A DNA stretch of 64,000 nt from Adineta vaga. Its lineage: Eukaryota; Animalia; Rotifera. A program made the translations under genes and the position numbers. The notes under the pieces are model-generated. The model worked only from the letters and a program-made list of their open reading frames with translations. It did no database searches and was not told where the DNA came from. The DNA is taken from assembly GCA_021613535.1 (NCBI GenBank), contig CP075492.1, positions 8,432,001 to 8,496,000 on the forward strand, written 5' to 3'. Below, piece after piece: positions 6,201 to 57,834 of this stretch; the stretch's first letter is position 1, and the number at the start of each line of letters is the position of its first letter.

Positions 6201-8407
6201 TCTTTCAAACGAAAGGTCGAAATATGGACAGCTGCAGATGCCACTCTGATCCATTCACCGTGTGTCAGAACAATTGATTCTAGTCGAAAAAAATAGCAGA
6301 AAAAGAGAGAACTAGATTATCCGATAAATAGCTCTTTGATTGACAATCAACACATTCATTCAATGTAAAAAGCACATTTTCACATTTAGACATGTACAAA
6401 CACTGATAACGAGTCTAGTATAGTTAGAAGCTCGATTTCTTCTCTATTTGACGTCACTAACGGCAAGCATTAGTTCGAGTAATTTTTCTCTCTCTTTCCA
6501 TTACAACGAAGAAAAGAAGAAGAAGTAGAAGAAGAAAAAAACGAACTGATCCTACAACATAGTGTACATCTGCTTTGTTCTTGCTTCGGGTAGTCATACA
6601 ATATCACGAGAAAGAAAGAAGTAACAGTCATGTCTACAGCTTTATCGTGCATGTATTGCGATAAAACAAAATGTAAGGTTTGATTTTGTCTATTCGTTTG
6701 TATACATTTCATCATATTTTTGTTTATATTTTAGCTCCTCTACAACCTCTAGCAATCAATGGTCGTGAACAACGAAATCGTATCTTAGCTAATGGATACG
6801 CTGCTCATCATCAACTAACATCAATTTTACCACCAGCCGCATCGCTTCAATCTCTTTCACCTTTATCTCCAGCAGGAAATTCTTCAAGTAATGTAGCGTT
6901 CACAAATTCAAATATTAACATTGAACAACAATCAATTCATTCGGAATATGATGAAAAAGAAAAATTAAAAAATGATTTACAACAATTAAAAAGTGAATTA
7001 CAAAAATCAAAAGAAACAATTGCACGTTTACAAAAAAGTGAAGAACAAATGCGTGAACGGTAAAGTTCAATACTCATAAATCTACGTAATAAGTCTGACG
7101 AAATAGAGAAAATAAAAGAAACTTTGTAAAATCGCATAGTCAGAGTAGTTAAGAGATAGTCTCAGAAGATTCCATGTAATGTGTGATCGGTACAATTATA
7201 TCGAAGTCATATTGAGAATAAGATACCTATTATTTTCTATTTTTGTCATTAAAGAAGTTACCAAGTTTCATAATAGAACAATATGTCTGACATTTATCAT
7301 CTAACTATTCTTATTTGCACACCGTCAAGCATAAAAATTTGCCATATGTTATCTATTGTGCTAGCTGTTATTTACTGAAAAGTAATAGCTGTATATACAT
7401 TATCCGAAAAGAAGTCTTCCACTATTTTAACAAAATCATATATTAATGAAAATAATATTCTTTATTTTTTAGATTAGCTGAACAAGCTCAACGACAACTA
7501 GAAAAAGGTGGTAAATTTGAAGATTTAAATCAAATATCACGTCCAACAGAATTAATTCGTTCATATAATACGCTTTATTCTCAAGCTCGTATTGATACAT
7601 TGGATGCTTTGGATAGTATTCGTGAATTGGCTGCAGCCGAAGATCTCAAATCAAAACTATTATTTTCAGTTGTTGTTGTATGTATTATTATCTTTTATTT
7701 TAGGCTAAATTAACATTGATTTGCTTTTGATTAAAGCTTGCTTTTCGTCATGCACAAAATCAAGCAAAAGAAATACGAAATAAAGTCAAACAAATTCTTC
7801 AATTATCAAGCGATAAAAGTTCATCGACATTAGAAGAAACAATTGAAAAATATCTTCGAAGTACCATACAAAAATATGATATTAGCAAAATTGCATCCGT
7901 ATGTATAAAAGAATAATTGATTGTTTTTTGTTTATCATTCCAGTTTTCTTTTGGTAGGAAGTAGAAAGTCAATTGTGGACAACATTATATGATTATCCAG
8001 CTTTGAGATCGTGCAATGAATTATTGAAATATATCACTACTGCCTGTCGAACTGCGTATGTATTCATTGACGTAACTATCTTCGATAGGATCTTTTTAGT
8101 TAATTAACTAGATGAGACTTTCGAATTTATCTATCTGTTTGTTTTCATCACTGAAATTTACTCTAATGTTTATATTTCTAGATGGGGTCTAGCAAATCAA
8201 ACTCCGCCATATTACATCGAATTTCAAACAATAAAATATGATAAACTTATTCATGAACGTTTTCATACATCTGACACTGATAGTGACACAATTATCGAAT
8301 ATGTTTGGCCATGTCTAATCGATGGTCGTGATCGAACATGTGTAGCGAAAGGTGTTGTTATTACCGATGAACATTATTTATCAACATCAAAAAATATGTC
8401 ATCTTAG
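267..8407 (+). CDS. Mitochondria-eating protein (MIEAP/SPATA18)-C-terminal-domain protein, long multi-exon isoform
   Basis: Phase-compatible exons 267-1233, 1294-1419, 2445-2474, 3147-3200, 6735-7059, ~7473-7677, ~7737-7898, ~7959-8055, 8182-8407. A coiled coil precedes RPTELIRSYNTLYSQARIDTLDALD...YVWPCLIDGRDRTCVAKGVVITD, which resembles the MIEAP C-terminal domain. Confidence 0.75.
5164..5800 (+). CDS. Candidate alternative first coding exon of the MIEAP-domain gene (Ser/Asn/Thr-rich)
   Basis: ATG at 5164, open for 212 codons + 1 nt, GTAAGG donor at 5801. Phase 1 matches the acceptor at 6735. Confidence 0.65.
6630..6672 (+). CDS. Candidate short alternative first exon (MSTALSCMYCDKTK) of the MIEAP-domain gene
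   Basis: ATG 6630, 43 nt, phase-1 GTAAGG donor at 6673, 62-nt intron to 6735. TGACGTCA upstream at ~6449. Confidence 0.55.
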
Positions 8408-8651: not shown

Positions 8652-11600
8652 TTATTCGGAAATAGAAGTAGTGATATGATCTGATTTTCGTTTTGTCCCA
8701 GATATAGATGATGTATCCATATCATCATCAGGTTTTGCTATTGATGCAATCGTTGACAAATAATCGACCATGAAGATATTATTTTCGACACTAAATGACG
8801 AAGATATATGCGTTGATAAATCTTTTTTTTTTGTTTAGAAGAATTTAAACTTACATTTTCCCCAAACTATCATGTTTTAATGTGAGATTTTTTTCTAGAT
8901 TACATAATGTTGTTAAAATTTTAGTTGAATTTGGTTTTAAATTATTGGTATGATTCATAAGGATATGATAAATCCATGAGAGATAGAATGCAAAATGTCG
9001 AGAATGTTGAATTTGTTCACTAATAAAATTTAGTAATAATTCAACGTACAATAATGGAAGAGATTGACAGATATGTTCGACTAGAAAAAGAATTTGTTTA
9101 CTTTTTTTTGTGGATAGATATTTTTTCGCCGAAAAGTCTTACCTTTGCTTGCATCAACATTTTCAATAATCTCAGTAACTAATGATTTTTCATTTAATTT
9201 AAGTGCCATAAGTAATGCCAAATAGGCATCATTTTTATCATACAATGTTTGACGTATGCTTAATGGTGTAATAGTTTCATTTAAATCAATTGGATCAAAC
9301 ATTGCAGTATTATCAATAGAATAGATAAGTAAACCTTCAGTTGTACATGCAGCCCATGCACGTCCTATATTACAATGAAAATTGATAAGAAAAATGAGCT
9401 ATGAATGATTTTTGTATTTGATTATTTACCTGTAGGTGAGAATCGGACGCAAGTAACTAAAATTTCTGGTTTGAAATGACGATTACTATAATCACCTTTT
9501 CGTACACCGGGTAGACGGATATTTTTTCCATTTTCATCTTCATCTTGTCCCATATCAATCAATGCTAAACTACCAAATTCTGTCATTTTTCGTCGATTGA
9601 GATATTCCTTAAATTAATAATAGACGAATATTATTTTCAATTAATTAATCTTACATTTAATCCATCAAAACTTTTATTGCATGCTATTTCAAAACGTTTG
9701 ACAAGAATTTGTTCATGGATATTATACAATGAAATATATTTTGATCGACCACCAGCTAACAAATAATTACCATCCATTGTATAGGAAATACTTCGATAGG
9801 CTCTAAATAGTATAATTAATTTAAAATATATTTTTCGAATTCGGTACAAAATCTAACCTTCCAAATGTCAGTTTTTTTCCTGTTACTTTATCTGTTTCTT
9901 TTCTTGCATAGCCCAAATCATTTTTGCCTTCAATTGATGCCGTTTGTTGGCCACTATCGGGATGAAAGAAAAGAATTTGTGCATCAACTGTCGATACAGC
10001 TATCTGTTGACCATCTGGTCGAAATGCACAAGATAAAGCTACAAGAAAAAGCAAAGAATATAAATCTCAAAATCAGCTACTTCCAAACCATCAGTAGACA
10101 GAAGAAATGTTTCTCGGGAACCTTGACTATCAAATAAACTCCATGTACGCAAAGTTTTATCCCATGAACAACTTGCCAATGTTGTTTGTGTTGTATTTCG
10201 ACCAAATGCCAATGCACTAATTGGACCTTCATGTCCACTAAGAATCTACATAAATAATTCACATTCATATTATTCTTTTTATAATATATAAATTAGAAAT
10301 TTACATCAAGTAATTTGCCGGTTTTAATTGACCAAACAAATATATTGAATGTATCAAAACCACCTGCACATACGACTTCACCAGCAGCATCCAATGCTAC
10401 ACACGAAAATTGAACTGGTGTTGGAGATGTATATGTACGAAAATTTCGGTATCTATTTATTGAAGAAATAATGAAAATAGAAGTAGGATATGAAGGACTT
10501 ACCTCAAAAGATCATATGCTCGAACTGTTCCATCCAAAGAACTTGAAACAATAAACTGTCCATTGGATGCAAATTCAAGACCAGTAATTGTTGATGAATG
10601 TTCCGAAAAAGTTACGAAACAAAAAGCATTCGATGTATTCCATAATTTGATCTAAATTTAAATAGTGATCAATCATCATTATCTCATAGGACAGTTTTCT
10701 GAGAAAAATAAATGACTAACTTTTCCATCATCACCACCACTGGCGATATGCATTCCATCAGGTGAATAGGCTAATTGAGTCATATTATTGAAGTGTCCTT
10801 GTTGTTTTAATACATATGTTTGACTCTGCCATTCCCATACAACAAGTTGACCAAGATTCTGACATGCTAAGGCAATCCAATCTCCTAATGGATTGAACAA
10901 TGCTGATGTAATCATTTGTTTTTGGTCACCAAGACTAGAAAAAGAACAAAAATAAATAAATATTTTTGTCATTGAAGAAACAAAGCATGACTTACCTCAA
11001 TGAATGAATGAGATTGAAATCAGGCATTTCATGAAGATAGAAATGTCCATTAGAGAAACCCGCTACTAACATATGTGTTTTCTTATGGTAATCAGCACAG
11101 AGAAGTAAAGCACCACGATCAGAACCTTCAAATGTTTCTTTATAGTTAAATCTAAACAAATATATTCATAGATTATTTTAAATTCCTCATAATAAAACAA
11201 TCGCCTATCAAATTTACTTATTCATTCGTTTAAAAACAACCATATCATCTTTTGTTGGATTTTTTAGAAGATGTTCATCTAAACGTTTCTGTTTTCGTTC
11301 AAGTTTAACACGTTCTTGTTCGACCATATCATCTAAATCTTCATCATCAACATCTTTATGACCATTGGATGATGTTGATATGTCTTCTGTATTAGTATTA
11401 TCACCATCCTCGTCGTCGTCGTCATCTTCAGTATCTGGTATATATGGCATAGGTTTCATTGATGATAACTCCATATCAACTACCCAATAGTTCACTTTAG
11501 CATTTTTACAAATAGTTATTATCTAAATTTACGAAAGAAATACAACTGCTTATTAACATAGAAATGCACTTTGAAACATACGTTCAATGAATCTTGCTCA

Positions 11601-40006: not shown

Positions 40007-41786
<1,780 letters not shown>

Positions 41787-42150: not shown

Positions 42151-44811
42151 ATACCTTCGTTTAATAAAGAGAAGAAAACTAAATTAACTTTAATAATATG
42201 ATGTGTGTCTATCGATAAGATTTCGACAAGAGTTAGTTTAAAGAATTTTGACAGATCGTCAATATTTGATTTGCTTTATTAGTGATTAGTACTGATTATT
42301 TCCTGCTTATATATATATATATATGTATATATTTTTTTTAACAAACGATTGAATGGCATACAAGTACGTATATATCCTATATAGTACACTGACAGTTTTC
42401 ATCCAGGGATTGATTTATAGATAGAATATCTCAAATGAAAATAAAATGTCATTGTTGACATATCTTTTCCATTAATCTAATGTTTGTCTTAAATGAAATC
42501 GACATCACAGATGGTAGTTTTCAATGAATAATATGTCACGACGCATAACTCATGTTCTCAATAAGAATTCTAACACATGAATAGAAAATATATTGAAAAC
42601 GAGAAAGAAAAAGAGATCTATCACTTCGTACTGAACATCATCACCTTCGAACCATTTTCTGCATTGAACAAGAGTGACGTCTTTGTTCTTTTATATGACA
42701 TACACATATACACATGAAGGAATAAAAAGAGTACCAATTAAGTAACTCTTTTTCTCTCATTCCTCCTCTTTTCGCTATCATTTGTTCGGTCGCTCGTTTT
42801 TCTTTATTCTCTCTCTCTCTCTCTCTCTGTCTCTTTTTTTTTTCAACGACAAATAGTTTTTTTTCGCTGACACATGCACATTACGATTTCTTTTGCTTTT
42901 TATACTATAACTATTGTAAATACTTCCTAATCTAGAAAACAACTTTTGTATCACAGCTGCGAATAATAAGAAAAAATAGGAGAAGAAAAAGGTATATTGT
43001 TATGGTTTTTATCTGAACATACAAATAAGATAATGTCTCGATATCAAGACAATAACGCTAAATATAGTTGATTTATATTATAGGCATATAAAACTAATAA
43101 ACACGGAAAGTATATCCAGCACCGGTCGAAGACAATAACAAAGTATAGAACGAAAGAGAACAAAACAAATTTAAGGACATTATGATATCCAGGCATCGTC
43201 TATTTATCAATGTGAGAACGAAAAAAGAATGACAATATTAGAATAATCTAGGTAACTATTACAATATACTCATACATATCTAGGACTTACTTCTATCAAG
43301 CAAAAATAGTCTCCTTCATTAGTCATTCATTCATCGTTTAGATCTTTGATTGATCTTCGATAAGAAGAAAAAAACGAAAAGGAAACTACTATTTCCTACC
43401 AAAATACTCTTGTAATTATCGCTAGAGTAAAGATATGTCATCTGGTATATATATATATATATATATTCTATTTACAAAACACATCAATCAGATTATATGG
43501 TAAACTGAAATTGCGATTGTACGTTCTTTGTCTGTCTCTCTGATATGTCACACTCTCACCAGCCGTTTTCTACTAATCATATGATTCGTATATGGATGGA
43601 ATATTTGTCAGTCTTATGAGAAGAATTCTTTCGTTCTGAGATGATAAAATTCAATTATGCAATATAGAAAGAAAAATAAACAGAATGATGATGGTGCTTT
43701 AATAGAAGTAGAAGAGATACTTCCATATACTTCGTTTCATTCTCGTGAAAAAAGAACCGAGTGCTTGGAATTATCTATTGATGAAATCCATTAAAGACTA
43801 TTTGCCTTATCATACAGATATGTTAATTCTTTCTAATTAACTGTTCTTTATGTCGTACGAAGTAGTAGGAATTCTTCTTAAACTTTCTCGTTAACACTAA
43901 ACTGTTTGTATACAAAATAGACCGACATAAGTTGTTGTTCTTCTATAGATCTTTTAAGCTTCTTTATACGTAGAACTATTTATTAAGGGACATGGAATAT
44001 GTCACACTAGAATTTACAGGCAAAAAAACGACATCATTATCTAAGAATCTTTAGAAGCTCAATTTTTGACACTAAATACAATCTAATCTTCAGTCCATAT
44101 ATAATTACCTATAGTTTTCAATGAATGAAAGAGAAAAAAATTCATATGCTAGATTCTAATCACTCGTATACTCAGATGTCGGTTGCTGCACATCTTATTT
44201 AGAAATTTTAGTTTTTTCCTATGAATTCGAAATGAATGTATTTGTCTGCTGAAAAAAACACTATATTCTTTACAAATAATTTGATATTCTTATAACGTTA
44301 TACAACTAAAACATTTCTGTTCACAGCTAGATTGAAACTTACATTCTAATAAAATTTAATGGAAAATTTTTTTTATACTAATGAAGAATGCATTGTTCGA
44401 TGAAATGTAGAGTAGAATAAAATATTGAATTGATTTTTTTTTTCAAACTAAAATAAATTACGAAAGATCATTAATCGTTTATTTTAATCTAAATACCTAA
44501 AACATTTTTGCTAATGTTTGAATCAAACAACAATCATGTAGAAATTGTTTTACGTAATAGTGCCAGTTGAATTATTAATTTAACAGTGTCTGTCCATAAA
44601 AAAAAGAAGATGGACATGGACGAGGACGAGGACGATGACGATCGATAGTGCTACTACACAATTCTATTTGTCAGTTTGTGACGACCAATGAAATGCTGAA
44701 GGATATTTTACTAAGCGAAGAGTATTATAGATGTCCGAAGCGTAAGTCATTTCATGTTTGAATGAAGAAAGAAATACAGAATATGCTTTTCGAAATTAGA
44801 TCTTTTTATTA

Positions 44812-45231
44812 TGAGGGTGTGGGTGTTTGCCAGCAGAACCTATGTGCGTCCTTAAAAAGTTGAGTGTTTGTGCTATTTGCATAAATTAGTAATAACCCAT
44901 GATCAGTTACAAGCACCTCTTCTGATGAAGTTTATTCAATGGTATATGTTTTGGTTTCTACAATGCACAGGGAAATCTGGACAATTTTCTACAGAACTTC
45001 AATATGTCATGAATCAATGTAGCAGTAGTCCATTTCAATTATTCAAACCATTACCAGTCTTAATCGTTTTTTGTGTTTCATTAATGAATTATCTCGGTTT
45101 ATATGAGAAAATATTTTTTTATACTAGAACTTTCGCAATTTGATACTATATTTCTAACAAGTAACGCTCGCCATCTCGAGGGTGAGAGTGCAGTTGCGCG
45201 TGAAGAAGATATATCCTCACCCACACCCTCA
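44812..45231. mobile_element. Putative MITE with TGAGGGTGTGGGTG terminal inverted repeats
   Basis: TGAGGGTGTGGGTG at ~44812 and CACCCACACCCTCA at ~45218-45231; TA precedes the left end. Confidence 0.5.
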
Positions 45232-45504
45232 GATTGTCGCTAATTATCATACATTTTAGTGTTAGAACTAATGACATTTGTACAGAAGTATGTGCGTTGT
45301 TTCTTCCTGAAACAAAATGAATTCATTTATGAAATAATTGTGATATCTGTGGAATATAGGAAATATAGGACAACTTTGAAGTCTATATTCCATACATAAG
45401 TTTCAGTACTGCTCATTGAAATCGCGATTGTGCTAGCTTCTACTCACCGTCACGCCGAAACACACATGGGAACATCTCGTCCACTGAGGGTATCATGGGA
45501 ACAC

Positions 45505-46580
45505 GCACATTAGGTGTCTCTCCTGATGAAGATGTGTATGAATATTTGAAACTTGAATTCAATTCAACTTTAAAGTTTGACTCTAGTAACTTTTTTCCTT
45601 CTAGAAACATTTTTATTGAAAACGAATAAAAGAAATCATTGAAAAAAGAACAAAGAAGTAAAGACAAATAAATTTTGACGGTGGTTGTAGGATCAGGATT
45701 ATATTCTCGTTTAATTATTTTTAATTATTAAAATATTATTTATATTATAGAAAAACAAATCATAAAAGTTGTAAATGATTTCAAGCAGATCAATATATAG
45801 GAATGATAAATTGTTTTTCAGTGATAATTTCAATCAAAAAATGATTACGAATTATAGCATAATTCGTTTTTGAGTTCTAATCCATATTTGTATTGTAAAG
45901 CTTTTACCACTCTTTCTGTATTACTTTGCCAATAATCTCGCAGATAGTTCGAGTCACATGTTGATCTGCTTGTGAATTTAATATATCCAACACTTATCTT
46001 CAATTCATTATAATCGTTGTTTCTTTCAAGCAGAATTTGTGTTAAAGTAGCACCTATTGCATCGTTAGATTCATTATCAAATGATACGTAGGTTTGTATA
46101 TCACTATTTGTATCGACATTGAATAATTCTTTCATTTTTTCTCTATTATTGTTATCCAGATTAGAGAATTTTCTATCAACATATTCTTCAAAATCGGCTT
46201 TGGCTAAGTTACTAGGAAATGTTGTCACTACAAGTCGTTCTTCACATAGATCTTGTCCAGATGCTTCGAAATTTGATTTAGTTGAAACACCTAGTGATGT
46301 TGTTACTACAGCTTGTTTTTGATAAGGATTTTGTCCAGGTTCTTCACATTTTCGTTTGGTTGAAACATCTGAATTGGTTTTTGATACAACTCTTTCTTCA
46401 CAATGAACTTGTTCACGTTGTCCTTTATACGATGCAATGAACCAATCATAATCTTGTTTGTGTTGTAAGAATTCTTCGACTCTTTTTGTCATAGGAGTTG
46501 ACATTATTTATATATTTTATGTACCTTTTGTTTAAAAGAAAACATAGACTTATTCAGATGTTTTTGGCTTGAAAATGCAA
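45505..46580 (-). repeat. Left arm of an inverted segmental duplication (partner ~49093-50008)
   Basis: The reverse complement matches 49093-50008 over the 5' flank, CDS and ~340 bp of 3' flank. Confidence 0.95.
45845..46504 (-). CDS. Uncharacterised intronless protein, 219 aa, paralogue A with an internal 26-aa repeat expansion
   Basis: Homologous to the 49171-49668 ORF; start and stop positions are conserved and the indels preserve frame. Confidence 0.8.
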   Translation of the reverse strand: MSTPMTKRVEEFLQHKQDYDWFIASYKGQREQVHCEERVVSKTNSDVSTKRKCEEPGQNPYQKQAVVTTSLGVSTKSNFEASGQDLCEERLVVTTFPSNLAKADFEEYVDRKFSNLDNNNREKMKELFNVDTNSDIQTYVSFDNESNDAIGATLTQILLERNNDYNELKISVGYIKFTSRSTCDSNYLRDYWQSNTERVVKALQYKYGLELKNELCYNS

Positions 46581-46613
46581 AGCGTTAGAAATAGTATTGC
46601 GATCTTTAACGAT

Positions 46614-46794
46614 GGGCGTAAATACTATCGACTCTCAATGGTAGAAATTCCGCTTTTCCCGCCTAACAGTTATTTGTTTCAAGGCTCTTAAACAAAAAAA
46701 AAGATCTTTAGACTGGAAAAATTGAAAAAAAATGGTCCTTCTAAAGAAAAAAATTAAAATTGTTGAACATTCGGAGCGCTGGGTATTTACGCCC
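46614..46794. mobile_element. Small MITE-like element
   Basis: Perfect 12-bp TIR GGGCGTAAATAC/GTATTTACGCCC, extending imperfectly to ~27 bp; TSD unclear. Confidence 0.6.
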
Positions 46795-47213
46795 CTAGAC
46801 ATCAGCCACGTTTGCACAAACTATCCAAATTCGCACATCACATCTTTAACGAACTCGTACTGAGACCAATATTGCTTGTAAAACCATATTCTCTTAATTT
46901 TCTCATGATCAGGAGCGCATGTCATGGCTACATTTATAGAGTATTATTGACCATATATATATATATATTAATAATATTTTTAATACATACATCTTCTCGT
47001 CAAATTTACGAAATTCACGCGTGTACAGATATCACGTACTTAAACTCATGCTATTTTCCATATTTGTTATGGGACAAATAACAACAATATATATAAATAT
47101 ATATTCGTCGTCCAACAATTTATCTGATCTATACTCTGACTCGTTTGCAATAATACACAACACTGAACAAATAGGATTCGAATTATTATTTTTGTCATTC
47201 ATGTGAAATACAA

Positions 47214-48044
47214 TAATTGTAGATGTCTAAAGCCTAAACATTTAGGATAGACTACAGTGTCTAAGCTAATAAACTGAATTATTTCGTGAATAAAGAAAGT
47301 CTATAGGCTCATTACCAAACTCAAAGGAAATGTTACATACTTTGATCTTGTTTGACTTTTGAAGTTGATTGCTGTTTATTATTGTATAATATGTAATGAT
47401 AATAAATAAATGTGGAGTTCAAGTATTGCGTTGATAATGAAAAACTTTCTTGTTAATGGCAAACTTCGATTTAAAAATTAAACCCTTCTACTTTTTACGC
47501 TTTTTGTGCTTAAACGTTAGAGTAACTGTGCATCTGGCCCACATACCCATATATATGAGGCAAAAGATAATATGGCTTTTCCCATTGGCATTCTTCATGG
47601 TGAGAAATGCATGATATGCAAAAGAAAAAAGAAAGTGCCAGAATAATACTGGGTTTTTTCTCTTTTTTCCTTTTGCATATCATGCATTTCTCACCATGAA
47701 GAATGCCAATGGGAAAAGCCATATTATCTTTTGCCTCATATATATGGGTATGTGGGCCAGATGCACAGTTACTCTAACGTTTAAGCACAAAAAGCGTAAA
47801 AAGTAGAAGGGTTTAATTTTTAAATCGAAGTTTGCCATTAACAAGAAAGTTTTTCATTATCATTACACATTATACAATAATAAACAGCAATCAACATTAA
47901 AACTCAAACAATATCAAAGTATGTAACATTTCGTTTGAGTCTTGTAATGAGTCTATAGAATTTTTTATTCATGAAATAATTCAGTTTATTAGCCTAAACA
48001 CTGTAGTCCATCCTCAATGTTTAGGCTTTAGACTTCTATAATTA
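47214..48044. repeat. Long hairpin/foldback: perfect 193-bp inner arms plus ~190-bp imperfect outer arms
   Basis: 47432-47624 is the exact reverse complement of 47670-47862. 47214-47403 vs 47856-48044 is roughly 90% identical by eye. Confidence 0.97.
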
Positions 48045-48139
48045 AAAAACTGTACTTTTAGTTTCCACATTATACGCTCAGGACATTATTTTTAAAAAAT
48101 TTTTCGCAACCAAAAGCACATGCCACGCCTAGACTTATA

Positions 48140-48970
48140 GAGTATTAATTACATGAAAAAAAAGGATGGTATATGGATGTTTTTTGAATAAATTTTCAAT
48201 GATGATAGCTAGTGAGCTGGAGTTTTCACATAGGAAAGACGAGACGTTGGAGCATCTTTTTAAAAACGGAAACATTTTAAGGAAATTTTTGAAAATTTGG
48301 TTTTCTGGAGAATCTTTAAAATACTTGTGCATAGAAGAAGAATTTGTAATACTAAATTTTCTCTTCTTTTTGCATCAGTAGATGGAGGAAAGTGTTTCCG
48401 ATAAAAAAACATTCAACCAATTGTTCAGATTTTGTTTTGCGGAGAATACTCAGTAGCGTAAATAGGGAGGGGGGGGGGCCGTTGGATGTGACCCCCTCTG
48501 CTTCGGAAAGTTAGTAGGAAAAAAGGATTTACACCCTCCTGCCTTTGAAAACCCCATTTTTTGGCCTTCCTGTATGGGAGAAAAAAGTTTAGCCTTTTTA
48601 AACAAAAAAGGTTTTTAAATAAATTTTCTGAGAACTAGAAAAAAAAGTTGCACCCTTCTGCTTCGACACCCGAGTTACGCCCCTGAGAATACTTTTACTC
48701 TATCAAATATCATTTTTCTTTATTTGCTGATGTAAAAAGAACGAAAAGTTCACTATTACAAATTCTTCCTCTATGCATATGTTCTTTTAAAGTTTCTTCG
48801 AGAAATAAATTTTCCAGAAACTTCTCTAAAAACATATCAATTGCAAAAAGATGCCCAATAGTCTTGCCTTTCCATATTTGAAACTCTCAGTTCTCTAACT
48901 TTCACCCGTCAAAAGTGATTTAAAAAATCATCCATATACCATTCTCTTTTTGGATGGCCAATAGTCTCTG
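48140..48970. mobile_element. Old MITE/foldback element with ~265-bp diverged inverted arms
   Basis: 48140-48405 aligns to the reverse complement of 48700-48970 (shared blocks ATGGTATATGGATG, GCATCTTTTT, GCATAGA.GAAGAATTTGTAATA). Confidence 0.75.
48451..48685. mobile_element. Non-autonomous hAT-type MITE, 235 bp
   Basis: Perfect 8-bp TSD AGAATACT (48443-48450, 48686-48693); TIRs CAGTAGCGTAA / TTACGCCCCTG; subterminal ACCC..CTGC(T/C)T repeats. Confidence 0.9.
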
Positions 48971-49092
48971 TGCATTACAGTTTAACATTTCCTGGAATTG
49001 ATGGTTTTTCGAACTCCTTAGAAATTCTTATCTCCTAATTAGAATGATTTATGCACAAAGAGACTTATTTCTCCTAATAATCTTTTTAGAAA

Positions 49093-50008
49093 TTTGTTTC
49101 TTCAAACAAAAAATATCTGGATAACTTTATATTTTGTTTAGAACAAAAGGTACATCAACAAAACTAGAAAATGTCGACATATATAGTATCAAAAGCTGAC
49201 AGATTTTTACAACAAAAACGAGATTATGATTGGTTCATTACACCATGTACCGGTGGAAATGGACGAGATGATTCTGATGAACGGGTTGTATTCACAACAT
49301 TTCCCAGTAATTTAACCAAAGCCGATTTTGAAGAATATGTTGATAGGAAATTCTCTAATCTTGATAACAATAATAGAGCAAAAATGAAAGCCTTATACAA
49401 AGCCAATACCGACATTGATATGGAAAAAAATGTGTCATTTGATTATGAAAGTGACGGCGCAATAAGTGCTGTTCTAACACAAATGCTGTTTGAAAGAACT
49501 CAAACTGAATTAAGAGTCAGTGTTGGATATATTAAATTCACAAGAAGACCCACAAAAGGTTGGCATTATCTGCGAGATTATTGGCAAAGTAATACAGAAA
49601 AAGTGATAAAAGCTTTACAATACAAATATGGATTAGAACTCAAAAAAGAATTATGCTATAATTCGTAATCATTTTTTGATTGAAATTATCACTGAAAAAC
49701 AATTTATCATTCCTATATATTGATCTGCTTGAAATCATTTACAACTTTTATGATTTGTTTTTCTACAATATAAATAATATTTTAATAATTAAAAATAATT
49801 AAACGAGAATATAATCCTGATTCTACAACCACCGTCGAAATTTATTTGTCTTTACTTCTTTGTTCTTTTTTCAATGATTTCTTTTATTCGTTTTCAATAA
49901 AAATGTTTCTAGAAGGAAAAAAGTTAATAGAGTCAAACTTTAAAGTTGAATTGAATTCAAGTTTCAAATATTCATACACATCTTCATCAGGAGAGACGTC
50001 TAATGTGC
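49093..50008 (+). repeat. Right arm of the inverted segmental duplication
   Basis: Reverse complement of 45505-46580; similarity ends abruptly after CTAATGTGC. Confidence 0.95.
49171..49668 (+). CDS. Uncharacterised intronless protein, 165 aa, paralogue B
   Basis: Shares DYDWFI, TTFPSNL.KADFEEYVDRKFSNLDNNNR and YLRDYWQSNTE...KALQYKYGLELK with paralogue A. Confidence 0.8.
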   Translation: MSTYIVSKADRFLQQKRDYDWFITPCTGGNGRDDSDERVVFTTFPSNLTKADFEEYVDRKFSNLDNNNRAKMKALYKANTDIDMEKNVSFDYESDGAISAVLTQMLFERTQTELRVSVGYIKFTRRPTKGWHYLRDYWQSNTEKVIKALQYKYGLELKKELCYNS

Positions 50009-50971
50009 AGTGTGGTTGTAAGATAGCTACCATGACGCATTTCATCCTTGCTTAAGGGACTTTTCAAATAGCTAATATTTTCTATATGATTTCGAAAAAT
50101 GACAAGAAATAATTCAGTTAAACATTTTATGATATATAATGGAGAGAAAGTAAACATAGTGACCTTTTTATGAAAACAGAAGATTTTAAAGATGAAGGCT
50201 GTGTGTGTAGTTGTGGATGAGAAACATATCCACACCCTCAAGATGGTAAATAAAATTCGAATGGAGACAGTTTTTGTTTGGTTATAAGTTTAGGATCATC
50301 AGGAGAACATCGATGACAATAACAGTATTCAATAATAAATATGTCATAACAGTTTTTGAAACGACTCATATTATGATCCAATACTGGTTCATCAACATGG
50401 ATGAGGGTGTGGGTATATCTTCTTCACATCGACACCCTCTACCATAGAATAGACAATAACATAATTTCAGAAGTGTGATCCGTAACTTTTCCCGCGCCAA
50501 AACCTTAATTATAGACTAGCTTATCTACAAAGTTTCAAAACTTTAGTTTTATCGAAGAAGTGGCGTCCTACAAGTAAACTAGGATATATAGTCGACGTCC
50601 TAGTCAAATCACAATGTGAGCCAAACTTCTTGGATAGATTCTCTATAAGACGCATTTTTCTCCAACACTACTTAAATCTTATCGGTCAATTTGTCCGATT
50701 GATGCACATCCTATTTTTAATCATATGCAGGTCTACGTAAAGAAGCTTTAAAAAATACTTTTTTTTACTTAGTCTTCCACATACTATATATGTATATATA
50801 TGTAAAGTGTGTAGTTATAAACATAAAATGAATTTTACATTAGTAAAAAAGAAACACACACACACACACACACGATGGTCAATTCATTTTTTTTTGCAAC
50901 AGACAAAAACCTATCTTTGGAAGACTATAATACTGTAATCAAAAGCACCGTATGTATATATTATTTTTAAA

Positions 50972-52981
50972 TCAGTGTTGAAGAAAGAAATAATCTATGT
51001 CGTTATTCGTGCACCGTTTGATTACTATTCTTTTTGATATTGTTCATTTGAATCGTTTGTAGTTGTAACTTGTTGCGAATGATTTTCATTGATTGTATTA
51101 TTAGAACTATTTGCGTTTTTAGAAAGATCGAATGCTGCTTCAGGCGAAGGCACTGTTGAAGTATTTTCTTCAATACTAAAGAAAAATCGAATATTCTCTG
51201 ATTTCGATCACTGAAAAACTAAAACTAAACGAACTGTGAAGTATTGTTTTGCGATGAATTGGCTAAATTGTTATTAGCTATGGAAGTTCCTTCTTGATGA
51301 TACGCTGGTTTACTAGCAAAATAAAGAGATCAATTACAATTAATTATTACTTGTAAATGTTGATTACTTACCGAAGTTTAGGTGCAAACAGTCGAGTCTT
51401 AGGTTTATGAATACCATTATACGTCTAAAAAGTGGTTAACAAAAAGAGAGTAAATTTTCTTTAATAACAACTATATGACATGCGAGTAAATTTAGTGACT
51501 AATAGGATGGAACTCTTTTGCTAACTACAGATCTGAACTAGATTGAAAAACGATTTCCTACTCTTGTTAAAGAATTGAGAGGAATGAACTGTAAATAGAA
51601 GTTAAATTCTTTAGTCTTATTGTACAAAAATATATTTTACCATCGATGAATATGAATCGATTGTTGATGGTATATACCAAAAATTTGTTGGGAAAACATG
51701 AGGCTAAAAAGAAATATAGTTCGATATGTTTTTGATTTTTCTTCGATTGTATCTTACATTTCTATTAACAAAATGTGTTTGCGGATAGAAATTCATGTTG
51801 AATTGTTGTGGATTTGTTGCATATGGAAGTGTTGTTGGGATCGTATGTTGATGTTGTAATATATTGACATTATAGTTTAAAGGTATAGGTTGTCGTTGTT
51901 GTTGCAAGATTTGTGTTGGATGATAATTCATTGTTGTTGGTTGTTGAGACAAATTTCGAAGAAATGATGATGGATTCGCATGATTAGTAGGAGGAGGTGC
52001 TGCTGGTGGAAGATAATTAGATGTATATTGTTCTTGAATGGAAGATTTAGGTGGTAAAGACTGTTTTGTTAAACCATCATTCGATGGCATAGGAGGTTTT
52101 TGCCAGAGACAAGCTTTCATTCGTGCCTGAAGAAAGAAGATAAGTCATGCTAAGAAGTAATAATGTAAAGTTTTACCAAAATCTTTTGACCACGTATTGA
52201 AATATTTTCTCGTGTAAGATATAAAAATGCATTTTGTGCATCATCTTCACTATTAAATGTCACATACCAACAATCTGAATGATCAGATTCTAATACTCGT
52301 TCACATCCGATTGCTGCAACTGAACATAAATCATTTATAAATAAACCTAAGATTTCATTATCAGTTGCATCCAATGGTACATTTCGTAAAATAATAATAC
52401 AACGTTTACGTGTTGGAAGATGAATTTTGCTATCAGATGAACGAACTCTTTTCTCTTCACTATCAACTTCAACTAAAGGAGATTCTACAATAAAGAAAAA
52501 CGATTAAACATATCTATTAGATCTTTTGGATTTACCCTTGAGTACATCAATAATTAATTGTAAATCATTTGTAAGACGTTTAATAAGTTTAAAATTTCCA
52601 ATCATAGATATCGGTACATAATTCTCAGCATCCATTTGTGATTGTAAATAAATATCATTAACGATATTTTCTCTACAATTTCAATAGATACCGCAAGGTC
52701 ATGACAAATATTTTCGAAAAAAAGAAAGAAATCTGCGATTTACTTTGAGAAATAATATTCAAGTTGTTTGCGTAGTTTTTCTCGTAATTGTTCCGGTGAA
52801 AATGGTTTATCTAAAACCATTGAAATGTCATGTATGAAATTGATTACATACATTTATATTTACCTGATGTTGCGTGATGATTTGCATTAAACATTGTCGA
52901 TGATTGATCATTTATAGTATACATTTGAGACTGATTGTGTCTCAGATAAGTTTCCATTTCATTATTCATCTGATTTAGCAT
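50972..52981 (-). CDS. LARP4: La-related protein 4-like (La motif + RRM)
   Basis: [32 protein letters not shown]...KRCIIILRNVP...WYVTFNSEDDAQNAF. Some 3' exons are uncertain. Confidence 0.85.
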
Positions 52982-53836: not shown

Positions 53837-56277
53837 ATGCCGTCATATGATGATGATCTACCAACGTCAGAAGAAGAGATTCTATTAAAACAACTGACAG
53901 AAAATTGTGAAGAACAACAACAACGGATTCGAACAATTATCGAAGTAAATTTAGTGGCATTATCTTGCTCCCATTGTTTCTCTTTCGTTTAATTTAGGTT
54001 AAAAATTTAGTCATTGGCTCGAAACGCTGTAAAACAGCATTCTATCGTGTTGGTACTGTTGATAGACTTTTTAATTTACTTCAAGAATTTTCATCATTAA
54101 ATAATCAAATAAATGAACCATTGATTGAAATTATTGATTGTATATCATCATTTGCGAAATCAAATAATAAAAATATTGTCAATCGTCTTATTGAACTTGG
54201 TTGTATTCAACAACTATTTTCTTTAATTTCCTCACGAAATGATTCAATTCAATTATGTGAATCATCTCTTCGATGTTTACGTTCGTTTTTTCTTCCGAAA
54301 TCTTCTATGATAACATTTTCGAAAGTTGATTATACAAATCCGTTTTTAACACCGATTCCATTTGTACTTTTATGCGATCAAGATGCACATAAACCTCCTT
54401 CTTTAATAACACAAACACCAAAACTTGTTCAACTTATTTCTTTCGAGCAATATTCACCGATTGAAATTCTTTTCGAAATTCCTCAATCACTCGACATACT
54501 TTTACATTTATTGACCATTTCAAAATCGGCACAATTATCTATTGTAGAAATTCTATGTTGTTTATGTGTGAATAATGAACGACAACAACAATTGATAGAG
54601 AAAAATTTTATCACAGCTATTAGTCATCTTCTTGTACAAAATATTTATGATAAACAACAATATAGTCAACATCAGAACAGTAAAATTTGTTCCATGAAGT
54701 AAAGATTTTTTTCATTAAAATTTTAAAAATAACAAAAATTTTGATTCATATTTTAGTCTAACAAATGAATATCTTATTGGAGTTTGTTTGAAATTTTTAT
54801 GTTCATTATGTTATGAAAATTCTTCTATTGCTCAACAATTACATAATACAACATCTACGGAAACCAATCAAACTTTATGCGAGATTATTTCTAATCTTTT
54901 AACAAAAAATTATCGACCAATTGTTATTTCATATTATGCATCGAAATTTTTCGTTAATCTTTGTAAAACCAAGGTGCTATCTGCTGATCATCCATCAGTT
55001 GCTCTTGAATCTCTTTCAACATTGATACATTTATGTACAAAGTCAAATCTAAATAAATGCGTTTATTTACATATTGAATGTCTTGATACATTGATTTATT
55101 TACTTAATGGTAATAATACATTACATAAAAATGCAACATATACGGAACAATTATTGAATAAATTATTTACATATATTTTCACCCCATCGAAAATTCTTGA
55201 TGAACAAATTGATGAATTAATTTTAGTACAAGTACGTTCATCAGCATTGACATTACTTGCTGTTCTATCATCATATGATGAGGATATTAAAAAACGAATT
55301 GCAGACAAAGATAGTAAATTTGTCAAACGATTCGTTTTGTTTTTGCTCATACTTATTTTGTTTAGATTTAATTGCAACAGCAATTGATTCTTATCGTTCA
55401 TCACATGTGTCATTACAATTAGCTGCTCTACGACTTTTTCATGGTTTATCACGAAGTGTTCATCAACTTCGTACAACATTCAATGATACGATTTGTGATA
55501 TCCTACTCGATGCTATTAAATCAAGTAATTTAGAAATTGTGAAGATTTCTTCTTGTGTAATTAGTAATATTGTTCTGGAATTTTCAACTTGTCGAACGGT
55601 AAATGAGACAATAGAAGAAAAGCATTATTGTTCGTTTGTTTTTTCATTCAACGAATTTAGAGATTACTCAATGGTGGTATATTGGATATACTTTTGGCAT
55701 TTCTTACACATACTGATCATGATTTGTGTATAAATAGTATATGGGCACTACGTAATCTTTCGTACTTATCGACATTAAAAATTAAACAAGATATTATCAA
55801 TGGTAAGTAGAGAATAAATACATTTATAGTTATCGATTTGACAAAATTTAGGTTTAACAATTGATCGTATTTATTCATTACTTGAACAATGTACCGATGA
55901 ACAATTTCTCATATGTTTATTATCATTATTACGAAACTTTTTCGATGAAAAAGATACTAATATACTTTTAACGATGTTTAATGAAGAAAAATTATTGAAT
56001 GTAAGTTAATTCATAATTCACTTGTTTCATATTCAATCGATTTCTTCCTCTTATTATTAGACATTGCAACTATTACGTGAGAAAACTCATCCAGAAGAAA
56101 TTCAACGTGAATTAAATACATTAATTGATCATCTGAATTCAAGCAATGATTCAGTAAAAGATTGTTTTCAAATTGAAAGCATTCATTTTCTTGAAATCTA
56201 TTTAGTTACAACAGCGATTATCTACTGATTCGGTTAATTCATCTTGTCGAACATCGTTATTTCCCGAATGTAACTAA
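53837..56277 (+). CDS. ARMC8: Armadillo repeat-containing protein 8-like (CTLH/GID subunit)
   Basis: KNLVIGS, LAALRLFHGLSRSVHQLRTTF, VISNIVLEFS and NSIWALRNL match ARMC8 blocks. Confidence 0.8.
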
Positions 56278-57834
56278 TCGATTTTATTTGAAAAATTTTA
56301 TTAGTTTTTATCTATAGATACATGTGATGAAATGGATCAATTGGATTGTTCATAAAAAATGAATACACATGGAGATATGTTTAATCTACTCATCGACTAA
56401 ATTAAACTGAATAGTGTTTGTTTCTTTTCCTATTTTGTCCTCTCTGTCTTTTGCAAAACAAAATTCAATGATGATATGCAACTAAAATAAACAAGATTAT
56501 GCTTTTCTTATTTTTTGAATATATGTACAATCTTGTTTTTATCTGAAAGAGATCAATCGATTCAAATATTGTTTTTTTGTCTCAAATGTCACATGCAATT
56601 TTACGGTTCGAATAATTAAAGTATTTGCGCAAAACGATATCACGCGTTTATTTCATGCACTTATCGAGAATTAGTCATCCAGTAATATGTCATATTGGAA
56701 TAAATAAATAAATCGATACATTGTCGAAAAATATAGAATTCAATTGTTTTACTTGATCTTATCATCATATATATTTATATAGAAAATTGAATAGAACTAC
56801 ATATTTTCCCATGATAATAATAGCGCCATCTATCATGCACATATCTTGTGTTAACATATATTTACTGAACTCATGAATTTCCGATGAAAAATTCAGATAG
56901 ATTCATCTAGATCTTCGATATCGTTTTTTCTATCATATTCGTTTTTACTCATATTAACGAGAAATCTTTAATAACATAGAAAATAATCGGATTTCTGTCA
57001 TTGAACTAACACCATAATGGAGGCAAAGGACTCTATGAAATGGCTGATCACATGTGATTAAATTATGTTTTTTTTGCGCTGTCTCTATCTTTATACGTAC
57101 ATTCGTTCTCATATGCATAGAACATCGTCAATGTCCTTTCATATCTCTAATATTTCGCATCATTGAACATACGTGAGTTATTTCGTATTTAAATTAATAT
57201 TCAAAACCTTTCTTCACTTCAAGGATATTTTAACTTGACAAAACAATTTCAAAGAAGGATTAGAAATGCATTTTTTTCTCTTGAATAATCATTTCTTTTT
57301 TTGGTATTATACGATAATCTATATGCGTTTACGTAGAATATCTTTGATAAATTTCGTTATGGAACATAAAAACTAGCTAAATGTCCTTTTTATGACCTTG
57401 GTTTCAAGTAACTGAATCTCAGATTGTTTTCGTTCGTTGTTGCTTCGCGCCCTACCGTCAAGAACAGAAAGAGAAAAAAAAGTTCTTTCTTCCTTCGTTA
57501 TGTATATATTCCTGTTTTCCTCGTGAGTCACTCTTCTCGTATGGTACAATGCTTCGTCACTATTACTTAAATGTTATTTAAAAAAAGCACTTTCACTTTC
57601 GCTTTCAGATTATTCTAATTTCAATTCTTCGACAAACTATCATTTCTTCATCTTTTGTGTTTAAGTAAGTGGAAAATCTTGCGAGGAAAATTCCTTACTA
57701 TAATTAATTCTTCTTTCACTCTTTTCTTTTTTATAGGTAGAACATTCTTTTATTGAATAAAATCAAGCTGCTGCCAAGTATACACTTGAAATTGAACTAC
57801 ACGTTGTTGAATATATATAATCACTAAATACCAG

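Follow-up and report, generated by a model that had tools for sequence, protein, structure and literature searches.

Does the imperfect palindrome of ~4.5 kb that lies in the gene-rich middle of Adineta vaga chromosome 3 (8.48 of 20.35 Mb) represent an undescribed mobile or defence system, as an earlier note on this DNA proposed, or does it have a more ordinary origin? The comparisons presented here gave no sign of a mobile element or a defence system at the locus, and in this respect the proposal of an undescribed system was not upheld.

Layout of the locus

The palindrome carries two genes, A and B, arranged divergently and head-to-head with one on each inverted arm (Table 1). Their open reading frames and a BLASTP comparison of the products (50% identity overall, E 3e-70) bear out the first description of two divergent paralogues of 219 and 165 aa, and each is a single, intronless open reading frame, as had been stated. 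Gene A has an insert of ~54 aa (162 nt) relative to gene B. All inverted repeats of at least 80 nt (spaced within 6 kb) in the window, that is, the whole 64-kb stretch of DNA analysed, are confined to the module. The flanking genes, earlier named as ERK and LARP4, were found as MAPK-like protein kinase exons on one side and a La-domain gene on the other. The homoeologous interval on C6 (for the homoeology of chromosomes 3 and 6, see PMC8494291) shares the kinase, La-domain and ARM-like genes and lacks the module, which agrees with its description as accessory, and no synteny was detected between the window and either the A. vaga C2 pair or L010.

The upstream blocks of both genes are conserved with those of the short genes in four other assemblies (alignment A4), with the 28 invariant columns lying mostly within the ~100 nt directly 5' of the ATG, and the alignment of gene B to L025 (81.7% identity) takes in 190 nt upstream of the ATG. 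Each gene may possess a conserved proximal promoter or 5'UTR of its own, within ~100 nt of the ATG.

Table 1. Features of the palindromic module and its surroundings, in window coordinates.
Feature	Position	Strand	Remarks
Protein kinase gene (flank)	40007-41511	-	MAPK-like exons
Single telomere-type cap, then filler	44808-45172		cap 44808-44826; filler is an 87% copy of C5:2041204-2041439
Left telomere-type junction of module fragment	45173-45234		head-to-head; ATCTCGAGGGTG... facing reverse complement of ATCTGAGGGTGTGGG...
Outer arms	45505-46007 / 49506-50008		503 nt, 95% identity
Left outer high-identity tract	45505-45923		3' flank and last ~26 codons of A; partner 49590-50008
Gene A	45845-46504	-	219 aa; long form, type 1 of uncharacterised 'DYDW...ALQY' family; paralogue of B; from ORF, mosaic residues, dN/dS
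Arm continuation 1	46021-46259 / 49260-49498		81% identity
Three copies of ~31-nt core in long-form insert of A	46229-46415	-	78 nt spacing; direct-repeat family D1
Proximal upstream block of A	46505-46600	-	AT-rich TATA-like box, pyrimidine tract + AG, TACA motif; from alignment
Arm continuation 2	46516-46598 / 49076-49158		75% identity
Central foldback	47214-48044		831 nt, single-copy; core arms 99%, outer parts ~90%
Hairpin core arms	47432-47630 / 47664-47862		33-nt loop
Second, older foldback in right spacer	48152-48956		arms ~74%; inverted repeats I5, I8
Proximal upstream block of B	49075-49170	+	same conserved motifs as block of A; from alignment, L025 identity
Gene B	49171-49668	+	165 aa; short form, conserved pair member; from ORF, orthologue identity, dN/dS, AlphaFold model
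Right outer high-identity tract	49590-50008		partner 45505-45923
Right telomere-type junction of module fragment	50193-50244		degenerate G-rich cap facing reverse complement of ATCTTGAGGGTGTGG
Filler fragment S3	50245-50399		155 nt; 83-86% copies at C3:20288213 and C4:16134
Third telomere-type junction	50400-50438		ATGAGGGTGTGGG ... ACACCCTC
La-domain gene (flank)	52504-52635	-

The protein family

Searches of Pfam, PHROG, NCBIfam and PADLOC returned sub-threshold noise only, and PDB sequence searches with the single protein and with a 19-sequence profile gave no match, so that the initial remark that the proteins belong to no recognised family stands. A profile search of 1.84 billion protein representatives yielded 44 matches, of which the named ones (Rotaria socialis, R. 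sordida, Acaulospora, Funneliformis and Rhizophagus) are bdelloid rotifers and Glomeromycota only. Two sequences from this search, P0041 and P0049, were discarded as spurious, one because it is the translation of a tandem repeat and the other because it is a YadA adhesin. A metagenome scan added two further loci only. Gene B orthologues are 62-83% identical, and the dN/dS of gene B (0.15-0.25 against the L010 and R. sordida orthologues) indicates that the short form is under purifying selection. For gene A the ratio is 0.6-0.7.

The structural check suggested for the 165-aa protein succeeded in part, giving a confident AlphaFold model (pLDDT 88, pTM 0.85) but no clear structural relative. The START/Bet v 1 rows of a Foldseek search against the PDB were rejected as non-matches (TM ~0.2, rmsd ~14 Å). 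A fold search of the ESM Atlas reached a TM of at most 0.50 by query, and its feature search produced nothing usable with the 165-aa protein or with the N-terminal half of P0047, a type-3 protein whose AlphaFold model (pLDDT 44) is unusable for reading the N-terminal region. Residues D18 and W21 are invariant in the family, near-invariance is limited to one Asp, one Trp and one Leu, no conserved catalytic constellation was found among the members, and the sequences show no evident signal peptide. The products are best explained as small cytosolic alpha/beta proteins of an undescribed family, the gene A form having a loop insert. A tentative guess is that the protein may be a binding or chaperone-like module that oligomerises and has no enzymatic activity, since near-invariant residues are few and the fold weakly resembles dimers of the SecB-like and roadblock/longin kinds.

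Distribution and origin of the family

Head-to-head pairs occur at A. vaga C2, L010, L025/L026, L019 and L031, and this layout is found in both bdelloid subfamilies; its recurrence in several bdelloid assemblies indicates that the arrangement is old. The R. sordida pair is in tandem, and the R. socialis and fungal genes are single. One partner has often decayed: the pairs at A. vaga C2 and in L025/L026 each combine an intact gene with a pseudogene. The expectation that homologues recur as inverted pairs beside a hairpin was thus correct for the pairing and wrong for the hairpin, which is no rule of the family: none was found at the type-2 pairs, and tandem and single genes lack the inverted arrangement altogether.

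At least three old bdelloid subfamilies of the family exist, in both Adineta and Rotaria; the spliced type-3 gene at C3:1.48 Mb entered the analysis exon by exon, without joining. In an unrooted tree the fungal clades fall between bdelloid type 3 and types 1+2, with deep nodes open. Horizontal acquisition is possible, since the only named non-bdelloid relatives are Glomeromycota. It would imply that the family entered bdelloids from a Glomeromycota-like fungal donor, or passed in the opposite direction, and that the present pair descends from a foreign gene. The absence of any other metazoan among the named matches of the 1.84e9-protein profile search, the lack of introns in the rotifer genes and the position of the fungal clades are all in favour of such a transfer. 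However, the fungal proteins reach an identity of only 17-26%, an intron interrupts the R. irregularis gene, the number of old bdelloid subfamilies means that any transfer was ancient, the tree is unrooted, and sparse sampling combined with fast evolution could mimic the pattern. On balance, we consider this origin somewhat unlikely.

Mosaic arms and probable gene conversion

Identity between the arms drops from 98.2% in the non-coding 3' flank and 96.2% at the end of the coding sequence to 76.2% in the adjacent coding sequence (Fisher p = 1e-18), and a further block at 46164-46223 reaches 93% (p = 0.002), making the arms a mosaic of 70-76% tracts and 93-98% tracts. Synonymous divergence between the long and the short copy is 0.34 in A. 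vaga and 1.15 in L010. Long-type residues persist in gene A in three places, the N-terminus, the tail of the insert (which aligns with the inserts of the long forms P0011, P0010 and P0013) and a 2-aa loop, and are mixed with short-type residues. The outer high-identity tract, with its sharp outer edge, is probably a recent gene-conversion tract, and the mosaic identity together with the mixed long and short residues of gene A fits arm-to-arm gene conversion. The features expected of a converting palindrome occur together here, namely paralogous genes on inverted arms, tracts too similar for the age of the duplication, and phylogenetic mosaicism. The high-identity tracts would then reflect conversion between the arms, by which an ancestral long-type gene was partly overwritten by short-type sequence; the arm-to-arm recombination raised in the earlier note is in line with the mosaic identity of the arms. 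Alternatively, gene A could have arisen independently as a recent copy of the short gene and acquired an insert at the same loop. This origin is what the tree by itself favours, as the long-form clade P0011/L010_long/P0013 (support 100/99) leaves out the long gene of A. vaga, and gene A has few long-type diagnostic residues.

The central hairpin

A long near-perfect hairpin is present at the centre of the palindrome, though the 193-bp perfect arms first reported were measured as core arms of 199 nt with 99% identity. Folded as DNA it reaches -385 kcal/mol (z = -63), and an Rfam scan gave only generic, sub-threshold matches to miRNA precursors. A DNA search of the 100.8-Mb genome, to be read with the caveat for single-copy results that it skips very common words, found no other copy of the 831-nt foldback and only self-matches for the palindrome arms and the left spacer, while the second foldback has a loop of which one part occurs once more in the genome (C6:12778667-12778963). 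The 'stacked MITEs' described earlier are hence not multicopy, and because the hairpin and arms are without another copy in the genome, both this label and that of foldback-element cargo are unsupported. The 199-nt hairpin may rather be a young local inverted duplication, or a product of conversion at the palindrome centre, than a transposon.

The same spacer at L010, between the same two genes, holds a 421-nt inverted repeat of 98% identity which is non-homologous to the A. vaga hairpin. Young inverted repeats at the same place in two species could mean that low-copy foldback elements have inserted there, and the central hairpin and the adjacent older foldback would in that case be foldback- or MITE-type insertions unrelated to the gene pair. 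Their ends as terminal inverted repeats, the unrelated young repeat of L010, the partial duplication of the second foldback's loop on C6 and the TA dinucleotide on each side of 47214-48044 agree with such insertions. Against them, the search of the 100.8 Mb yielded the 831-nt element only once, TA flanks are trivial and uninformative in DNA of 30% GC, and the long inverted repeats of the window all lie within the module, so that insertion appears unlikely, albeit not negligibly so.

Telomere-type junctions around the module

The motif GAGGGTGTGGG has four matches in the window against 0.03 expected, all of them flanking the module, and three facing pairs of telomere-type sequence are present (Table 1). 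These four motifs, which bracket a module-bearing fragment of ~5 kb, are new here. On either side of the filler at 50245-50399, homology to its copies ends precisely at the cap; the comparison of homology breakpoints rests on this filler, the module fragment being without a source copy. The left half of the right junction is degenerate, and the end of the fragment, placed at ~50192, is the less certain boundary. The telomere hexamer of A. vaga is TGTGGG (PMC7943196), and interstitial TGTGGG repeats beside transposable elements and foreign genes in bdelloids are attributed to Gladyshev and Arkhipova (2007), as cited in PMC7943196. We infer that a ~5-kb fragment (45235-~50192) may have been joined into the kinase-LARP interval along with two small filler fragments, putatively by the bdelloid repair route that links broken ends bearing short telomere-type repeats.

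Origin and significance of the module

Taken together, the locus is probably an old local head-to-head duplicate of paralogues, the arms of which have been partly homogenised by conversion, carried on a fragment that was patched in by telomere-type repair. A more far-reaching interpretation, which we regard as improbable, is that the compact and extended paralogues form a conserved two-subunit module of unseen fold, shared between bdelloids and arbuscular-mycorrhizal fungi by ancient inter-kingdom transfer, that the A. vaga cassette was relocated intact by telomere-cap-mediated joining, and that the hairpin is regulatory (as dsRNA or cruciform) for the bidirectional pair. If true, telomere-cap repair would be a way to move working host genes.

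It is very unlikely that the two genes constitute a two-component conflict system (effector and immunity, or toxin and antidote) held together by the palindrome, as the earlier note also contemplated. The linkage of compact and extended forms in both subfamilies and several species, and the narrow and patchy taxonomic distribution, would be expected of such a system, but the two paralogous products share one predicted fold, no PADLOC or toxin-family matches were obtained, neither a signal peptide nor a catalytic constellation beyond the invariant D18 and W21 is evident, and the genes occur singly in R. socialis and fungi or beside a pseudogenised partner. The two functionally different, co-dependent products that characterise toxin-antitoxin pairs were not found. 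It is harder still to see the whole 4.5-kb block as a foldback-type mobile element with the genes as cargo in long terminal inverted repeats: the inverted arms do have a sharp outer edge at 45504/50009, the genomic surroundings of the pair are different in L010, and the homoeologue has no such pair, but the block (arms, hairpin and left spacer) is single-copy and has no transposase, most of the arm length shows an identity of 70-76%, the head-to-head pairs at C2, L019 and L031 have no inverted repeats at the DNA level, and the telomere-type junctions 190-270 nt outside the arms explain a relocation better. Finally, an assembly artefact, in which two haplotypes of one gene were joined inverted, has a precedent in AV13, the A. 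vaga draft of 2013, whose palindromes arose from the scaffolding of phased haplotypes (PMC8494291), and would suit the 420-nt tract of 98% identity, but is highly unlikely given arms that are mostly 70-76% identical and differ by a 162-nt insert, the same head-to-head pair in independent assemblies of other bdelloids, and the absence of all the old palindromes from AV20 according to its authors (PMC8494291).

The locus defines an uncharacterised, confidently folded protein family with named members limited to bdelloid rotifers and Glomeromycota, and a candidate for ancient gene sharing between fungi and animals. It also provides what is probably a clean, small-scale case of gene conversion acting patchily between palindrome arms in an asexual animal, and extends telomere-type repair junctions beyond subtelomeric debris to the gene-rich core of a chromosome, where they bracket a gene pair that is intact and under selection. 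If the joining of breaks moves working genes in bdelloids, this bears on how genes are reshuffled and acquired without sex.

Comparison with known systems

In primate sex-chromosome palindromes, gene-bearing arms are kept similar by arm-to-arm gene conversion. The A. vaga module resembles these in having the same gene on each inverted arm, a unique spacer between them, and some tracts whose similarity far exceeds that expected from the age of the duplication. It differs in being a hundred to a thousand times smaller, in that the probable conversion is patchy (98% beside 70-76%) rather than arm-wide, in that the copies keep distinct long and short forms, and in the second, near-perfect hairpin nested at the centre. 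With foldback elements and MITEs it shares long inverted repeats, a short loop, AT-richness and an intergenic position, but here the repeat is single-copy, belongs to no family and has no demonstrable target-site duplication, and the large arms hold conserved host-type genes with putative promoters of their own. At the protein level, the likeness to SecB-like chaperones, roadblock/longin domains and PDB 2o2a is weak and confined to the fold. The interstitial telomere junctions of bdelloids are matched by the ATCT(T)GAGGG(TGTGGG) motif in head-to-head pairs at the points where homology of copied fragments stops; whereas those junctions are subtelomeric and surround the debris of transposable elements, the ones described here lie in the gene-rich middle of chromosome 3 and bracket an intact, conserved two-gene module.

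The gene pair and its palindrome

In the source assembly (G000, 100.8 Mb in six contigs), of which the window is G000:C3:8432001-8496000, the proposed head-to-head paralogues on inverted arms around a hairpin are borne out by two divergent ORFs, the long gene A and the short gene B (Table). Their products are 50% identical overall (E 3e-70), differing mainly by an insert of ~54 residues in A following residue ~28, and within the insert region a ~31-nt core occurs three times at 78-nt spacing (direct-repeat family D1). The inverted arms start at 45505 and 50008 and extend ~1.1 kb inward, and every inverted repeat of at least 80 nt within 6 kb in the 64-kb window belongs to this module. Both genes are real, and the short-form orthologues show a dN/dS of 0.15-0.25. 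The 98%-identical 3' flanks also carry mirror-image ORFs with TTG starts (75 aa, 45440-45667, minus; 69 aa, 49846-50055, plus), which are probably not genes.

Coordinates and properties of the features discussed (window positions unless a contig or locus is prefixed; L0xx, loci found in the searches)
Feature	Position	Strand	Description
ORF A (long form)	45845..46504	minus	219 aa
ORF B (short form)	49171..49668	plus	165 aa; divergent from ORF A
Left neighbour			protein-kinase gene (MAPK-like exons)
Right neighbour			La-domain gene
Conserved upstream blocks	46505-46600; 49075-49170		alignment A4 of upstream regions
Foldback	47214-48044		831 nt, between genes A and B
Second foldback	48152-48956		older; arms ~74%
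Arms, non-coding 3' flank			98.2% identity
Arms, last 26 codons			96.2% identity
Arms, next 240 nt of CDS			76.2% identity
Arms, 60-nt block	46164-46223		93.3% identity
Arms, 5' end and 5'UTR			70.0% identity
GAGGGTGTGGG matches	44813; 45220; 50229; 50403		4/4 adjoin module
Facing cap pairs	45173-45234; ~50193-50244; 50400-50438
Left filler fragment	44827-45172		87% copy of C5:2041204
Module fragment	45235-~50192		unique in genome
Right filler fragment	50245-50399		83-86% copy of sequences near C3 and C4 ends
Type 1			window pair
Type 2, A. vaga head-to-head pair	C2:14.72 Mb		left partner broken
Type 3, A. vaga copy (C3:1.48 Mb)	L023:2607-3773 (G000:C3:1480606-1481772)		type-3 protein: longer, hydrophobic segment precedes domain
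Type 3, A. vaga copy (C5:11.28 Mb)	G000:C5:11283929-11284306
Head-to-head pair L010, short gene	7690..8178	minus	another bdelloid-like assembly
Head-to-head pair L010, long gene	10001..10651	plus
Head-to-head pair L025 and L026			closest relative, 82% identity; long partner a pseudogene
Head-to-head pair L019
Head-to-head pair L031

The module is indeed accessory, as had been proposed. Chromosomes 1, 2 and 3 of A. vaga AV20 are homoeologous to 4, 5 and 6 (PMC8494291), and the homoeologous interval on C6 retains the kinase gene (94% amino acid identity between C3 and C6 in the tested exon), the La-domain gene and an ARM-like gene, while it has nothing in common with the window from 42153 to 52095; no family members are found on C6. 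Divergence between the homoeologues is very uneven, the ARM-like gene to the right of the La-domain gene (54121-57181 versus G000:C6:7826080-7829433) having ~58% protein identity against 94% for the kinase exon.

An undescribed and narrowly distributed protein family

The products of A and B gave nothing above noise in Pfam, PHROGs, NCBIfam, PADLOC or PDB sequences, and the pair is not a recognisable defence pair. A word-based search retrieved eight close relatives together with both window proteins, and a profile search (12 query sequences) just 44 proteins at E <= 1e-3 among 1.84 billion representatives, two of the 44 being spurious. The named members are from the bdelloids Rotaria socialis and R. 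sordida and from the Glomeromycota (Acaulospora colombiana, A. morrowiae, Funneliformis mosseae, F. geosporum and Rhizophagus irregularis), and the remaining matches are metagenome or read-archive contigs. The window genes belong to an undescribed, taxonomically narrow protein family, which comprises three subfamilies in bdelloids. The type-3 gene is spliced (its exons were entered separately, without a joined model), its hydrophobic segment is seen in the metagenomic orthologues P0045 and P0047, and an in-frame TAG interrupts the C5 copy. In the tree, which is unrooted and in which deep nodes are open, types 1 and 2 are sisters and fungal clades lie between these and type 3.

The AlphaFold2 model of B, obtained from an input alignment of 12 rows, is confident (pLDDT 88, pTM 0.85) and predicts a pair of helices at the N-terminus, an antiparallel sheet of four strands whose first strand is followed by two inserted helices, and a long helix at the C-terminus. 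No convincing fold relative was retrieved by Foldseek against PDB (TM ~0.2) or by the ESM Atlas search (TM <= 0.50). Invariant positions in the broad family alignment are limited to D18 and W21, with L149 close to invariant, which argues against an enzyme; a low-confidence guess is that the protein may be a binding or chaperone-like module that oligomerises and has no enzymatic role.

An old layout, probably homogenised in part by gene conversion

Head-to-head pairs recur at several loci (Table): among bdelloids the family typically has this old arrangement, with exceptions. R. sordida carries its short and long genes in tandem, 4.5 kb apart, and in R. socialis, Acaulospora and Rhizophagus a single gene is present within 8-10 kb. 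Three telomere-type hexamers lie between the tandem R. sordida genes (L018:1769-1786), and may mark a rearrangement that changed gene orientation. The L010 pair resides in a different neighbourhood, as the A. vaga orthologues of its flanking gene are at C2:11.9 Mb and C5:7.7 Mb. The partner gene is dispensable: besides the long pseudogene of the closest relative, the left partner on C2 (L007:7528-7933; G000:C2:14721527-14721932) has its N- and C-terminal halves in different frames and one TAA, the intact partner being 156 aa. The earlier note had asked whether inverted pairs recur beside a hairpin; the pairs do, at several loci, but no hairpin is present at the C2, L019 and L031 pairs, and a hairpin is therefore not required.

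Arm identity along the module is strongly mosaic (Table), with a sharp outer edge at 45504/50009 and a marked difference between the outer tract and the middle of the CDS (Fisher p = 1e-18). That the non-coding part is more alike than the coding part is the reverse of what selection would leave, and matches a recent conversion tract. Synonymous divergence between A and B is 0.34, compared to 1.15 in the L010 pair. Three other assemblies have long forms that group in a clade (support 100/99) without the A. vaga long gene, which is placed with the A. vaga short gene, and an independent recent duplication is an alternative origin for gene A. Gene A nevertheless has features of the long clade, namely an N-terminal KR-x-E motif, an insert with the same position and tail, and a loop longer by two residues, while its C-terminus is of the short type, with the same four extra terminal residues as gene B. 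Gene A would then represent the ancestral long gene, partly overwritten by the neighbouring short gene. The paralogue pair is old and has probably been homogenised in part by gene conversion.

The central hairpin and proximal control regions

The core of the 831-nt foldback has 199-nt arms, 99% complementary, and a 33-nt loop; folded as DNA, the hairpin reaches -385 kcal/mol (z = -63). Rfam returned generic miRNA-hairpin matches only, all sub-threshold. A genome DNA search, in which very common words were skipped, gave no other copies of the foldback, the arms or the left spacer; as these are single-copy, there is no MITE family at the locus, and the reading of the module as stacked MITEs or a foldback element is not supported. 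In L010, too, the spacer between the two orthologous genes, short and long, holds an inverted repeat (421 nt, 98%, 492-nt loop; L010:8508-9841), which is centred on the axis of the pair and does not resemble the A. vaga hairpin in sequence. Each of these two central repeats is much younger than the duplication that produced the genes. We favour an origin in which local palindromic duplication or conversion would have acted at the centre of a pre-existing palindrome; insertion of low-copy foldback elements is a fair rival.

A block of ~100 nt before the ATG is conserved over five assemblies and ahead of both window genes; its elements are an AT-rich TATA-like box, a TACA motif and a pyrimidine tract plus AG. 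Each gene therefore has a proximal control region of its own, and the hairpin, over 700 nt distant, is not the core promoter. All six upstream regions of alignment A4 share the conserved pyrimidine tract plus AG at ~20-30 nt before the ATG, which hints at a trans-splice acceptor or an intron in the 5'UTR; 'intronless' may then apply to the CDS only.

Telomere-type junctions around the module

A motif search built on the ATCTTGAGGG boundary of subtelomeric telomere-repeat hairpins (query GAGGGTGTGGG, up to one mismatch) gave four matches in the window, where 0.03 would be expected. The telomere-type caps, ATCT(T)GAGGGTGTGGG, lie within 44808-45234 and 50193-50438, midway along chromosome 3 in a gene-rich part, and the cap motif is absent from L010, the C6 interval and the region of the C2 pair. 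Facing cap pairs delimit three joined fragments (Table), and the homology of the right filler ends exactly at the caps; on its right side the module fragment has a degenerate cap, which makes that boundary less certain. The gene pair thus probably sits in a patch within a housekeeping interval, most simply explained if the module fragment and the two fillers were joined into that interval by repair of ends bearing telomere-type repeats. These cap-bracketed fragments are a new point of locus context, in a species whose telomere repeat is TGTGGG (PMC7943196).
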